DNA of 32,735 nt, taken from the sequence record NC_034625.1; one strand, 5' to 3'. Under the pieces are notes generated by a model, which was not told where the DNA came from, made no database searches, and was given only the letters and a program-made list of their open reading frames with translations. Positions within the stretch are counted from its first letter, which is position 1. Each line of letters opens with the position of its first letter. Shown here piece by piece: positions 25,400 through 28,994 of the stretch. The translations under genes and the position numbers were made by a program.

Positions 25400-26464
25400 T
25401 TGGAAAAACCGATTTATTACGTTTACCCTCAGCACCATGACGTTTCATTCAAATTTGTGGCTAAAGAACATATTAAAATGTTGAGAGAAAAATATACAGT
25501 TTACGAAATTCCAGCATTATCTTTCTATCAATTTACACCTTTCAAATATCCAATTTCTATAATTCACCCATTCTTCTATAGCATATGGCACTGGGGAAAA
25601 GTTGAATTTTCTTTCTTTGAACAGTATAGAAGCCGAGTTTCAGCAATTGTAGGAGTTGAAGTAGCTGACAGTGATAGAATTTCAGAAAAATTCATAGATT
25701 ATGCTAATAATTATGCTGATAGATTAATTGGAAATTCAGAATGGACTATAAACGCTTTTAAAAATTCTGGACTAAAAATTCCAATTTTCAAAGTTGTTCA
25801 TAATTTCAATTCTAGATTATTGGCAAAAGATAATGAGTTAAAAGTTGATGAACAAGTTAAATATATTGAAAAAGTTAAAAATGAGAAGAAAATTAAATTG
25901 ATATTTATTTCACTTTGGCATTCTGATTTTAGAAAAGGAGCGGATTTATTTCATAATATTGCTAAAGAAATACAAAAAGAAAGAGACGACATTTATTTTT
26001 TAGTTAAATCTGGAGGGCCAAGGACAGATTTTCAAGATTTGAGAATGTTTAATTTGACTGGAAATACAGATTTTGACAATATTGTTAAAATGTATAGAAT
26101 TTCTGACTTATATTTGTTGCCTTCAAGAGGCGGAAGTTTTGAACTTAATGGACTAGAGGCATTCATTTCCAAAATTCCGACAATTGCCACAAAAGGTGGT
26201 GCATGGGAAGAATATTTTCCTAACAATTTAAAAGATTTATTAGTAGATTCTTGTAGATTTCCAGATGTTCTTTGGAATAATCCAATTCATATTGGACAAG
26301 GAGTAGAAATGTGCATAAATAACGCAATAGAAAAAATCTTAGAAGTTCTAGATAAACTAGATGATTATAAAGCAAAAATTGAAGAAAACTATAACTTTTG
26401 GCTAGAAAACTTTAGTTATGAAACTGTAAAAAAACAATTATTTAACGCTTTGACTTTTACTTAA
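25400..26464 (+). CDS. GT-B (GT4-like) glycosyltransferase, 354 aa
   Basis: RKGADL and LLPSRGGSFELNGLEAFISKIPTI; TTG start with SD GGTGA. Confidence 0.92.
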   Translation: MEKPIYYVYPQHHDVSFKFVAKEHIKMLREKYTVYEIPALSFYQFTPFKYPISIIHPFFYSIWHWGKVEFSFFEQYRSRVSAIVGVEVADSDRISEKFIDYANNYADRLIGNSEWTINAFKNSGLKIPIFKVVHNFNSRLLAKDNELKVDEQVKYIEKVKNEKKIKLIFISLWHSDFRKGADLFHNIAKEIQKERDDIYFLVKSGGPRTDFQDLRMFNLTGNTDFDNIVKMYRISDLYLLPSRGGSFELNGLEAFISKIPTIATKGGAWEEYFPNNLKDLLVDSCRFPDVLWNNPIHIGQGVEMCINNAIEKILEVLDKLDDYKAKIEENYNFWLENFSYETVKKQLFNALTFT

Positions 26465-26809
26465 AAAATCATAAATTTTTAGTAATGCTTCAATATTTTC
26501 TTCTCTCTTTAACTTCTTTATCTCTCTTATTATTTCATCATAAATATTATTAATTTTAATCAGTTCTAAAACTTCCTTAATTAGTAAAATTGAAAATCTA
26601 TGAGATTGTTGAACTATAACATAAATTTTTCTTGCTAATTTTTCAGCATCAAATTTATCATATTCAATTGAAAGTTCAACATCTGAATATTTTGCGGTAA
26701 CATTATTTTCATAAAGAGTCAAAAAAAGTTTATATTTGTCTTCTACAATTACTTCAGCTTGATTATCATTTATCTTAACTATCACGTTTTCTCTTAACTT
26801 AAACTCCAT
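26438..26809 (-). CDS. 123-aa hypothetical protein
   Basis: ORF track (start 26818 or ATG 26809); class-2 promoter at 26834-26846. Confidence 0.7.
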   Translation of the reverse strand: MEFKLRENVIVKINDNQAEVIVEDKYKLFLTLYENNVTAKYSDVELSIEYDKFDAEKLARKIYVIVQQSHRFSILLIKEVLELIKINNIYDEIIREIKKLKREENIEALLKIYDFLSKSQSVK

Positions 26810-26898
26810 GTCTATCAATATAATATATATTTTATGACATATTTATTTCTTTAAATTTCGAGTAAATCTTAAATTGGTCATAATGTAGGAGCTATGAT

Positions 26899-28089
26899 AT
26901 GGAATTTAAAAGAGAAAGTTCCGGAATAATAAAAAGCTTTTCAGCATTAGATATTTTTTCAATTAATCTTTTGTATATGGGAATTTTAAGCGGAATAAGC
27001 TATCCATTATTTGTCTCTGAAATGATGAAAAATGTAAACTTATTATTTGCAATTTTAATAGGCTCTGCTTTTGGAATTCCACTTTTAGTAATGTACTATT
27101 TGCTAACTAAGAAAATACCGTTAAATGGAGGAGATTACGCTTATATTAGATCTTCATTTTCTCCAAAGTTTTACACAATTTTCGGAATTTCACTATGGCT
27201 AATTTACGTATTTTCAGCTCCAGTTTTATCTGATCTTGTATTGTTAAATTTCAATATTCCAGTAATTGATAAGTTTTTAATTTCAGAATTATTATTTGCT
27301 ATTGCTTTACTTAGCATAGTTAAAAAGTCAATTTATGCATATATTGTAGACGGAATTGCAATTTTACAAATAATTGTTTCTTTAATTCTGCCAATTTCAA
27401 GTTTCCATTTTCAAGCCCCAAATTTCATATTATCAAACACTTTACTTTCAGCTTTACTATTTGATTTGTCTATGTTTCTCTTCATAAATGCGATTAGTTA
27501 TATAGCTGGCGAAACAAAAAATGTAGACAAATCCATGAAAATTGGATATTTCTTAAGTTACTTTGTAGTTACAATATTAGCGTTATTAGACAGTTATTCA
27601 AATTTAAATATCTTATTTCTGTTAATGCCGATATGGTTTATGAGTTATATTTTTGTTACTTCTATGATTCAAAGTAGATTAATTCAAAATTTAGCATTTG
27701 ATAAAATCTTACCTGAAAAATTTGCAAAAATAACGCCTAATGCTTTACTGTTAATCTTTATCGCTGATACAATTGCAAACGTTTTAGAAAATCTATTTAA
27801 TTTCTCAATTTCATTTGGATTTGATGGATTATTATTCATTTTCTGGAACTTTATAATTGTTAGTTTTGCATTTCTAAAGCTAACAAACAAAAAACTATTA
27901 TTTTCAATAGTAATGATTAGCCTAATTTTACAGATCTTCTTATTCTTTTATCTAGGCATATCAAATTCAATATTCTATAATTTTGTAATTCAAGGAAATG
28001 TTCTATTTGCAATATTAAGAATATTGCTAATGCCAATTTTAGGAGGAATTATTTACTTGTTAAGGAGAAAAATTATAAACGCTGAATAA
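26899..28089 (+). CDS. APC-superfamily permease-like membrane protein, 396 aa (SIRV ORF399-like)
   Basis: Many TM segments and the APC loop motif PLNGGDYAYIRSSF. Confidence 0.85.
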   Translation: MEFKRESSGIIKSFSALDIFSINLLYMGILSGISYPLFVSEMMKNVNLLFAILIGSAFGIPLLVMYYLLTKKIPLNGGDYAYIRSSFSPKFYTIFGISLWLIYVFSAPVLSDLVLLNFNIPVIDKFLISELLFAIALLSIVKKSIYAYIVDGIAILQIIVSLILPISSFHFQAPNFILSNTLLSALLFDLSMFLFINAISYIAGETKNVDKSMKIGYFLSYFVVTILALLDSYSNLNILFLLMPIWFMSYIFVTSMIQSRLIQNLAFDKILPEKFAKITPNALLLIFIADTIANVLENLFNFSISFGFDGLLFIFWNFIIVSFAFLKLTNKKLLFSIVMISLILQIFLFFYLGISNSIFYNFVIQGNVLFAILRILLMPILGGIIYLLRRKIINAE

Positions 28090-28091
28090 AG

Positions 28092-28994
28092 ATGAAATTG
28101 GTATTTGGCATTTCTAGTTCAAGAAGTTATTTTTTTAAAACTAATTTTCCAATTTTAGTTAATCAACTAAGATTTAAAAGAAAAACATGGAGAAATGAAA
28201 CTTGGGTTGATAGTGGCGGATTTCAAATTATAATGCATAACTTAAAAATTTCTGTAAATGATGTCTTGCAAAAGTATAAAAGTGTTAATGCTTACGCATT
28301 TTTTTCTCTCGATATTCCTAGCGTTTTTGCACCTCTTGACAAACGGAATTTTGAATATTTTGAGTATCTCTACACAAAAATTGAATGGATAGAAAAAATT
28401 ATACCAGTTTTACATATTTATCCACTTCAAGATTTGGATAAAGCTATTGATTTTTACAAACAATACAGTTATTATTTTGCAATTGGCGGAATAATGACTT
28501 CTAGCAAATTAAGAGTTTTACAATATACATTTCCATGGATTTATTACCTAAAAAGAAAAGTATCTTATCTTCACGTTCTCGGTATATCATCTCCATATTT
28601 TTTACAAATTTTTAATAATATACAAAGCATGGATACCGCATTTTGTTCAATAATTTCAGCATTTAAAGAAATAATTTGGGTTAATGGATCTAGGAGATAT
28701 ATTGGAAATATGAAAACAAAAAGGGAAAGATATAAAATTACAAAAGAAGAAAAAGAACAATTGTTTGAATTTTTAGATAAGCATAATTTCCCATTTGAAT
28801 ATGACTTAAATAATAGGCATATTTTAGAACTAATAAACGCTTATATTCTATTGTATCATAATTGGAAAATTAAGAATAAGTATACTGAATATGCAGAAAA
28901 ACTTAGAAAAATGGGATTAGACAGTTTGACAAGCGAGTTAATTAGAAATTATAAAATTGCAAATGAAATATTAAAACAGAAAAGAGAAAAATAG
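28092..28994 (+). CDS. Guanine transglycosylase (TGT/DpdA-like), 300 aa
   Basis: DSGGFQ, LDIP, IPVLH, AIGG, HVLG and SMD motifs; no CxCxxC zinc motif. Confidence 0.85.
   Translation: MKLVFGISSSRSYFFKTNFPILVNQLRFKRKTWRNETWVDSGGFQIIMHNLKISVNDVLQKYKSVNAYAFFSLDIPSVFAPLDKRNFEYFEYLYTKIEWIEKIIPVLHIYPLQDLDKAIDFYKQYSYYFAIGGIMTSSKLRVLQYTFPWIYYLKRKVSYLHVLGISSPYFLQIFNNIQSMDTAFCSIISAFKEIIWVNGSRRYIGNMKTKRERYKITKEEKEQLFEFLDKHNFPFEYDLNNRHILELINAYILLYHNWKIKNKYTEYAEKLRKMGLDSLTSELIRNYKIANEILKQKREK

Follow-up and report, generated by a model that had tools for sequence, protein, structure and literature searches.

Paired permease and zinc-less transglycosylase-like genes of Sulfolobus islandicus rod-shaped virus 10: a candidate module for 7-deazaguanine modification of viral DNA

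Introduction

What do a permease gene and a transglycosylase gene do side by side in the genome of a rod-shaped virus of Sulfolobus islandicus? The question is raised by the window analyzed here, which is the full 32,735-bp record of Sulfolobus islandicus rod-shaped virus 10 (SIRV10; KY744230 / NC_034625; Usarudivirus, Yellowstone), with a G+C content of about 25%. An earlier note on this DNA had described an APC-like permease gene and a gene of the tRNA-guanine transglycosylase (TGT) type lying 2 nt apart, and had suggested that the virus modifies its DNA using a host or imported precursor, or else remodels host tRNA. Both open reading frames (ORFs) were verified; they are separated by a spacer of 2 nt and coincide with the annotated ORF42 and ORF43 of NC_034625:

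26899..28089, + strand: ORF42, candidate permease (ATG at 26899, stop codon at 28087-28089; 396 aa; membrane protein of about 12 helices)
28092..28994, + strand: ORF43, TGT-like gene (ATG at 28092, stop codon at 28992-28994; 300 aa)

As an overall explanation, to which we give slightly less than an even chance, we propose that the two genes form a base-supply and base-exchange module that modifies viral DNA. A DpdA-like reading of the enzyme was already predicted by Hutinet et al. (2019; PMC6884629), who listed 12 Ligamenvirales and 2 Bicaudaviridae among the viruses with 7-deazaguanine genes, described the Ligamenvirales DpdA genes as singletons, and proposed that DpdA-only viruses use the host intermediate preQ0. 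New here are the zinc-less clade to which ORF43 belongs, its His signature, the cassette around its cellular homologues, and the comparative case for a coupled importer. Searches of the literature on SIRV2 ORF310, on rudivirus transglycosylase or permease, and on modified STSV1 DNA returned nothing useful.

Results

Fold and active site of ORF43

ORF43 is publicly annotated as a queuine tRNA-ribosyltransferase, and phrog_887, which bears the same name, matched it with an E-value of 1e-66. No match to the Pfam TGT family (PF01702) was obtained for ORF43 at E-values up to 10. Pfam searches with ORF43 alone or with a profile of its close family gave no link to TGT, neither query had a sequence match in the PDB, and only one of the 16 close relatives matched Pfam TGT, and that weakly. 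Because these narrower searches were empty, a wide representative search was needed to establish the sequence link. A profile search of 1.84 billion representatives gave 264 relatives of ORF43, 72 of which were aligned; Pfam TGT matched 46 of these 72 sequences, and phrog_887 matched 71. The 72-sequence profile matched arcTGT (1iq8, E 1e-36), DpdA (7ui4, E 7e-19), and bacterial and eukaryotic TGTs.

The AlphaFold (AF2) model of ORF43 built on the 72-sequence alignment had a pLDDT of 95.3 and a pTM of 0.92. Its top structural matches were all TGTs, with a Foldseek probability of 1.00 to arcTGT and TGTs, and the VIA comparison with solved TGTs gave Z 20-22 and a root-mean-square deviation of about 3 Å over 246-264 residues. 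The arcTGT, bacterial and eukaryotic structures were tied at Z 20-22 and not separable, and DpdA 7ui4 was absent among the matches listed by Foldseek and VIA. As modelled, ORF43 is a member of the TGT superfamily with a (beta/alpha)8 barrel fold, remote by sequence.

The residues D40 (DSGG), D74 (LD), and D181 (SxD) were invariant across the 72 homologues and aligned with the Asp residues of 1iq8 and 7ui4, as expected from the earlier note, which had the catalytic Asp motifs retained. Asp40 was aligned with the GDCGAF motif of 7ui4 and the DSGSFQ motif of 1iq8. In DpdA, Asp95 is the acid/base, Asp130 binds the base, Asp256 is the nucleophile, and His181 forms a hydrogen bond with the base (PMC10164549). 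The corresponding positions in ORF43, together with the segment that stands in place of the zinc site, are as follows:

28209..28211, + strand: Asp40 codon, DSGGFQ motif; equivalent to DpdA Asp95 and bacterial TGT Asp102; general acid/base (PMC10164549)
28311..28313, + strand: Asp74 codon, SLD motif; equivalent to DpdA Asp130 and bacterial TGT Asp156; base-binding
28413..28415, + strand: His108 codon, PVLH motif; aligned with DpdA His181 (VAHGW of 7ui4) and with the Gln of arcTGT (IQGS of 1iq8)
28632..28634, + strand: Asp181 codon, SMD motif; equivalent to DpdA Asp256 and bacterial TGT Asp280; nucleophile
28779..28838, + strand: zinc-site replacement, residues about 230-249; KHNFPFEY...LINAY instead of CxCxxC...H (column-by-column comparison)

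His108 was at least 90% conserved in two alignments of the ORF43 family. The CxCxxC zinc site, which the note had reported missing, is indeed gone: ORF43 holds a single Cys, and the aligned segment lacks all four zinc ligands. The motif was also gone in the nearest 40 or so representative clusters, both viral and cellular, so that the zinc-less state defines a broad clade and is not confined to rudiviruses; more distant relatives retain CxCxxC...RAxHNAW. The model ends after the barrel and two or three helices, and the C-terminal C2 and PUA tRNA-binding domains were not found in ORF43 (300 aa, versus 582 in the arcTGT chain 1iq8). ORF43 is thus described here as a zinc-less, barrel-only member of the TGT superfamily and a candidate DNA guanine transglycosylase. 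Throughout a large and diverse zinc-less clade, the residues for catalysis and base binding vary little or not at all, which points to retained chemistry, and ORF43 is very probably an active base-exchange enzyme.

Relation of ORF43 to DpdA and arcTGT

The closest relative with chemical data is gp15 of STSV2, a Sulfolobales virus. This protein has been published as a DpdA, and STSV2 virion DNA carries dCDG, whose base is 7-carboxy-7-deazaguanine (CDG), at 0.04% of G (PMC10516641). ORF43 and STSV2 gp15 share 37.5% identity over 90% of the length. In a quick, unrooted IQ-TREE tree of 86 rows, which comprised unnamed relatives and archaeal viruses and had no named arcTGT, bacterial TGT or DpdA1-4 anchors, the rudiviral TGT-like clade had an SH-aLRT of 99 and was joined, again with 99, by STSV2 gp15 and a homologue from Conexivisphaera. 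The phylogenetic check suggested in the note was answered in part, in that ORF43 groups with the STSV2 'DpdA' while the tree gives no position relative to arcTGT or bacterial TGT anchors. Like ORF43, gp15 is a short barrel-only protein, zinc-less by alignment, from a virus without preQ0 synthesis genes. However, the STSV2 enzyme is paired with a DUF5591/ArcS-core gene (ArcS2; PMC10516641) and has no permease, whereas SIRV10 has the permease and no DUF5591 gene.

ORF43 shares with bacterial DpdA (Salmonella Montevideo, 7UI4; PMC10164549) and phage DpdA1/DpdA2 the TIM-barrel TGT fold and the three invariant Asp residues. As in bacterial DpdA, a Phe is stacked on the base and a His occupies the place of the Gln of tRNA-TGT; phage DpdA, for its part, works alone with host preQ0 (PMC6884629). 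In contrast to bacterial DpdA, ORF43 lacks the CXCX2CX22H zinc site and is about 120 residues shorter (300 aa versus 436 in the 7ui4 chain), and the DpdA-specific insertions are probably missing. No ParB-like ATPase was annotated beside the pair in the SIRV10 window; DpdB itself was not searched for.

The best solved sequence match of the zinc-less clade was arcTGT of P. horikoshii (1IQ8), with an E-value of 1.2e-18 over the catalytic barrel. This enzyme uses preQ0, has the same catalytic Asp triad, and matched the ORF43 model with a structural Z of 21.6. However, arcTGT has the zinc site, the C2 and PUA domains and a base-binding Gln, and it acts on G15 of tRNA, whereas ORF43 is without these features. 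Taken together, the evidence favours DNA over tRNA, and DNA is probably the substrate of ORF43, because the enzyme groups with STSV2 gp15, carries His108, consists of the barrel only, would act in a host that owns arcTGT, and has cellular homologues in a DNA-processing context (see below).

Pairing of the two genes across viruses

The earlier note stated that the pair occurs in other rudiviruses; this was confirmed, and the two genes were found as neighbours in three arrangements. In all 23 SIRV-type IMG/VR loci the permease gene was followed by the enzyme gene in the same direction with a gap of -4 to +8 nt, and the genes flanking the pair varied widely among these 23 loci. The order was reversed in a rudivirus-like contig (L124), in which the enzyme gene precedes the gene of a 483-aa permease homologue with a 1-base overlap. 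In SRV the two genes are convergent and overlapping.

The SIRV2 homologues, ORF399 for the permease and ORF310 for the enzyme, are both expressed. In each of the four runs of a 2013 study, RNA-library contigs from SIRV2-infected cells spanned the junction between the two genes, for example a contig of 2,368 nt (L035:4866-7233), and the intergenic bin upstream of the SIRV2 pair was almost empty in the RNA libraries. Sixteen further RNA-seq runs (X5-X20), from two other organisms and six studies of 2019-2025, each contained about 8% of the sampled words of SIRV2 L035:4300-7300; these words are possibly a spike-in or a shared reagent sequence.

Other neighbours were seen in some viruses. In SSRV1 (L012:5264-5887, ORF28-207) and ARV2 (L013:5264-5887), a conserved 207-aa protein is encoded 9 nt after the permease gene. 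The possibility that it is a diverged TGT was rejected (hhalign probability 8%, no Pfam family), and the permease may have this protein as an alternative partner in these two viruses. SBRV1 has a gene of the PAPS-reductase / PP-loop ATPase family (PF01507; ORF23-270, L004:1107-1916) near its TGT-like gene. A PF01507 gene, itself with a weak QueC match, also lies near the TGT-like gene of an archaeal metagenome contig (L007:10994-11878), and the two PF01507 proteins share 25% identity (E 5e-13). They may be a further 7-deazaguanine tailoring enzyme, of which SIRV10 has no counterpart.

ORF42 and its relatives

ORF42 was matched by phrog_8289, 'aminoacid permease', with an E-value of 6.5e-200. 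AA_permease_2 was the sole family in its Pfam scan, and we treat 'APC-like' as a weak call because the score (19.6 bits) was under the cut-off of 27. The other indications were consistent with this label: the ESM Atlas feature score to APC permease clusters was 0.96, a profile of nine rudiviral permeases reached PF13520/PF00324 proteins with an E-value of 5e-10, and several close homologues bear a precomputed PF13520 match. By our count, the permease has 9-13 hydrophobic segments. The AF2 model of ORF42, made from a 16-sequence alignment, had a pLDDT of 44 and was too poor for fold analysis.

In the sources searched, ORF42 homologues were found in rudiviruses or rudivirus-like contigs only; word-based searches with single sequences and profiles gave rudiviral proteins and a few distant APC proteins, and no close cellular relatives. 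A scan of genome contigs with the permease gave matches only in rudivirus-like contigs of two actinobacterial assemblies, Streptomyces gamaensis and Planomonospora alba (L015, L016; 4.3-kb and 32-kb contigs whose encoded permease shares 70% identity with ORF42). These contigs are almost certainly contamination, which also explains the name 'MULTISPECIES ... [Bacteria]' given by NCBI to a SIRV3-like TGT protein (P0075). Homology of ORF42 to YhhQ/Vut_1 (PF02592) or to an ECF S-component was not detected by the Vut_1 search of the window or by the Pfam scan.

ORF42 is accordingly put forward here as a candidate importer whose presumed substrate is a 7-deazapurine base. That it supplies ORF43 with this base is a tentative proposal, with a little under even odds. 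The transporters with a proposed role in 7-deazapurine supply are YhhQ/Vut_1 (COG1738), a preQ0 transporter, and the ECF S-component QueT. ORF42 would share this role with them, and in cells it is a Vut_1 or ECF-S-like gene that takes the corresponding place next to homologues of ORF43. ORF42 is homologous to neither, however, and resembles no family other than the APC amino-acid permeases. Some phages encode YhhQ (Hutinet et al., 2019; PMC6884629).

Cellular homologues and their gene cassettes

When metagenomes were scanned with a profile built from the zinc-less homologues of cells, 265 relatives were obtained. Eighty of the loci were examined, with our own ORF calls and seed searches, and 68 were distinct. 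Since many of the metagenome contigs are truncated, the neighbour counts among the 68 loci are lower bounds. A gene for DUF5591, the ArcS catalytic core, directly adjoined the enzyme gene in at least 33 loci; HerA or NurA was encoded within four genes of it in at least 33, and a candidate transporter within four genes in at least 22. Vut_1/YhhQ, the family of the E. coli preQ0 transporter, was encoded directly upstream of the enzyme and in the same direction in L008, L009, and L043.

A protein of about 220 aa with 5-7 membrane helices, which resembles an ECF S component, was found in 28 loci. Its matches to Pfam PF07155 (ECF S component) were below threshold, with E-values from 4.5e-4 to 0.04; its Atlas score to clusters named 'ECF transporter S component family protein' was 0.96, and a PDB sequence search with it was empty. 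The usual order of the cassette was a small DUF6364 protein, the ECF-S-like protein, DUF5591 and the TGT-like protein, followed by HerA, KAP and NurA in either orientation. This cassette recurred in the archaeal loci L008, L009, and L043-L083 (for example L056:5854-8428), with a DUF6364/zinc-ribbon protein in first place and KAP being an NTPase. The setting of the cellular homologues, as judged from these neighbours, appears DNA-directed and like a defence island, and on our analysis the archaeal cassette looks like an undescribed counterpart of the bacterial Dpd modification-restriction system.

For 35 of the 68 loci, a gene no more than two positions from the enzyme encodes a protein with at least four membrane helices, in comparison with 51 of 225 background genes from the same loci; as the loci are related to one another, this comparison does not rest on independent samples. 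Transporters of three unrelated types, YhhQ and ECF-S-like in cells and APC-like in rudiviruses, stand beside this enzyme family, which is what would be expected if the enzyme needs a salvaged base. The coupling in cells lends independent support to the idea of import.

Further membrane proteins were noted in other zinc-less members. In another sub-clade (L088, L091, L094, L097, L100, L103, L105, L110, and L112), a same-strand gene downstream of the enzyme encodes a protein of about 284 aa with 3-5 membrane helices and no Pfam family; next in line in the same nine loci is a Trm112-like zinc-ribbon protein of 141 aa. Directly upstream of the zinc-less TGT-like gene of L119, L120, and L122 lies a gene for an ABC-type permease of 543 aa (BPD_transp_1).

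Source of the base

The note had found no que/fol genes, and targeted searches of the window upheld this: QueC, QueD/PTPS, radical SAM, and GTP cyclohydrolase I (FolE) gave no match. Searches of the window for DUF5591 (ArcS core), Vut_1 (YhhQ), and PAPS_reduct were also without a match. With no synthesis genes of its own, the virus has to obtain the base either from the archaeosine pathway of the host or from an external source. The presence of the pathway in hosts was judged from tallies in a control genome, that of S. acidocaldarius, and from the literature. The S. acidocaldarius genome gave matches for TGT, QueC, QueD, and FolE, and none in the searches for YhhQ and DUF5591. All genes of the archaeosine (G+) pathway are present in Sulfolobi (Hutinet et al., 2019; PMC6884629), and S. 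islandicus owns arcTGT genes, SiRe_0019/0018 (PMC9976878).

Gene layout and promoter

Upstream of the pair in SIRV10 lies a gene on the opposite strand, and the gene 3' of ORF43 is convergent; with the upstream neighbour on the other strand, ORF42 and ORF43 stand alone as a unit. The block CTTAAATTGGTCATAA (26868-26883, 14-31 nt before the ORF42 start) was kept in most American SIRV-type loci, and its conservation persisted even where the sequence farther upstream was unrelated. It contains the following element:

26868..26875, + strand: TATA-like box CTTAAATT, centred about 27 nt before the ORF42 ATG; conserved among American SIRVs

Judged from its sequence and position, the TATA-like box CTTAAATT is likely the promoter of the two-gene unit. 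The distance of about 27 nt between its core and the ATG suggests that the mRNA would be leaderless or nearly so.

The upstream neighbours in the window are a GT4-type glycosyltransferase gene (25400-26464, + strand; Pfam Glyco_trans_1_4, E 5e-10) and an ORF of 126 aa without a family on the opposite strand (26438-26818, - strand), which overlap at their 3' ends. In several other SIRVs, the glycosyltransferase gene is the co-directional upstream neighbour of the permease gene.

Discussion

The ORF42-ORF43 unit would probably be transcribed from the TATA-like box just upstream of ORF42. In the enzyme, Asp181 would attack C1' of a guanine nucleotide, with Asp40 as the acid/base; guanine would leave, and a free 7-deazaguanine base, which may be preQ0 or a relative such as CDG, would take its place. 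By analogy with phage and STSV2 DpdA, the substrate would most likely be double-stranded viral DNA, in which case a small fraction of the viral G would become 7-deazaguanine. The likely purpose would be to blunt host nucleases or defence systems. ORF42 would be an APC-like permease in the host membrane that imports or concentrates the 7-deazaguanine base, with the role that YhhQ/Vut_1 or the ECF-S-like proteins may have in the cellular cassettes. DNA as the target, the identity of the base, the substrate of the permease and the anti-defence purpose are what we infer from these comparisons. Among the readings considered, the one already offered in the note, a DpdA-like modification of viral DNA with a host or imported precursor, fits the evidence best.

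Several observations weigh against this proposal. The zinc site is held to be conserved throughout the DpdA family (PMC10164549) and is missing from ORF43, so ORF43 departs from the family in this respect even if it is DpdA-like in function. The profile of the zinc-less clade was nearer to arcTGT (E 1.2e-18) than to bacterial DpdA 7ui4 (E 3.4e-7), and the PADLOC DpdA models matched neither ORF43 nor its zinc-less relatives, only distant relatives that bear the zinc site. On these two results, the ancestor of the zinc-less clade may be an archaeal TGT and not bacterial DpdA. No chemical data on 7-deazaguanine in the DNA of any rudivirus were found in the literature searched. STSV2, the sole measured relative, is modified at a very low level, and its known genes do not account for the modified base (PMC10516641). 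On the side of the permease, ORF42 resembles amino-acid permeases and no known carrier of 7-deazapurines or nucleobases, and a host that makes preQ0 would leave no obvious need for an importer. The pairing is also not universal: SBRV1 has both genes about 5 kb apart, a profile search with positive controls found the permease and no TGT-like gene in the whole genomes of SSRV1 and ARV2, and STSV1/2/4 and the virus-like contigs L123 and L126 have the enzyme and no permease. Finally, the bridging RNA contigs come from SIRV2, not SIRV10, and cannot prove a single transcript.

Alternatively, preQ0 made by the host alone would feed a DpdA-like enzyme, and the permease would serve the uptake of, for example, amino acids, polyamines or another nutrient that aids virus production; the two genes would then be neighbours only as members of one co-expressed accessory cassette. 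The preQ0 pathway is present in Sulfolobales hosts, host supply is what Hutinet et al. (2019; PMC6884629) proposed for DpdA singletons, and the sole family resemblance of the permease, to amino-acid permeases, its presence without the enzyme in SSRV1 and ARV2, and the enzyme without the permease in the STSV viruses all agree with it. However, the adjacency of the two genes has survived three gene arrangements and highly variable flanks, in all 23 SIRV loci the start codon of one gene overlaps, or lies almost against, the stop codon of the other, and transporters from unrelated families are found repeatedly next to cellular homologues of the enzyme. We regard an unrelated permease as unlikely, if the most serious of the competing explanations. 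A second competitor has ORF43 act on RNA, inserting 7-deazaguanine into tRNA or another RNA of host or virus and retuning translation, like a stripped-down arcTGT. Among solved structures, the tRNA enzyme arcTGT is nearest in sequence to the zinc-less clade, and the public annotation names a tRNA-ribosyltransferase. The arcTGT catalytic domain, according to work attributed to Sabina and Soll in 2006, is reportedly functional without the PUA domain. Nevertheless, the host already has an arcTGT, ORF43 is without the C-terminal tRNA-binding domains and the zinc subdomain and carries His where tRNA enzymes carry Gln, its cellular homologues lie beside HerA, NurA and KAP genes and not translation genes, and its STSV2 relative accompanies modified DNA. 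The tRNA alternative is accordingly disfavoured, and we consider it improbable.

ORF43 might also have lost base exchange along with zinc and now be a binder of DNA or 7-deazapurine, or a decoy against a host defence that senses or uses the base. The loss of the zinc site, which is said to be structural and to be kept throughout TGTs and DpdA, and the lack of a Pfam TGT match speak in its favour. In contrast, the residues that catalyse exchange and bind the base hardly vary, if at all, in the zinc-less clade, the confident, compact model (pLDDT 95) suggests that helices substitute for the zinc knuckle, and STSV2 DNA is modified even though the STSV2 enzyme is zinc-less by alignment as well. 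Loss of activity is thus a very remote prospect. Starting again from the two-gene modification module, a bolder version can be formulated: ORF42 would found an APC-type family of importers for 7-deazapurines (preQ0/CDG) and would form a self-contained viral 'salvage and insert' module with ORF43, while the zinc-less clade and its cassette would be the archaeal Dpd counterpart, whose modification half was captured by rudiviruses and STSV as a counter-defence. In this full form the proposal is rather unlikely.

7-Deazaguanine modification of DNA is an established counter-defence of phages and has barely been explored in archaeal viruses. The source of the base in STSV2 was left open by the 2023 paper (PMC10516641), and a virus-encoded importer, if true, would answer this question for rudiviruses and would represent a new transporter family for precursors of queuosine and archaeosine. 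SIRV2, for which genetic tools are available, is the principal model among rudiviruses, so the prediction is directly testable; if SIRV DNA proved unmodified, the pair would be an unexplained conserved accessory module. Beyond the viruses, the zinc-less clade indicates that TGT and DpdA enzymes can do without their 'conserved' structural zinc, and the gene cassettes of cells suggest that archaea have a modification-restriction system of the Dpd kind.

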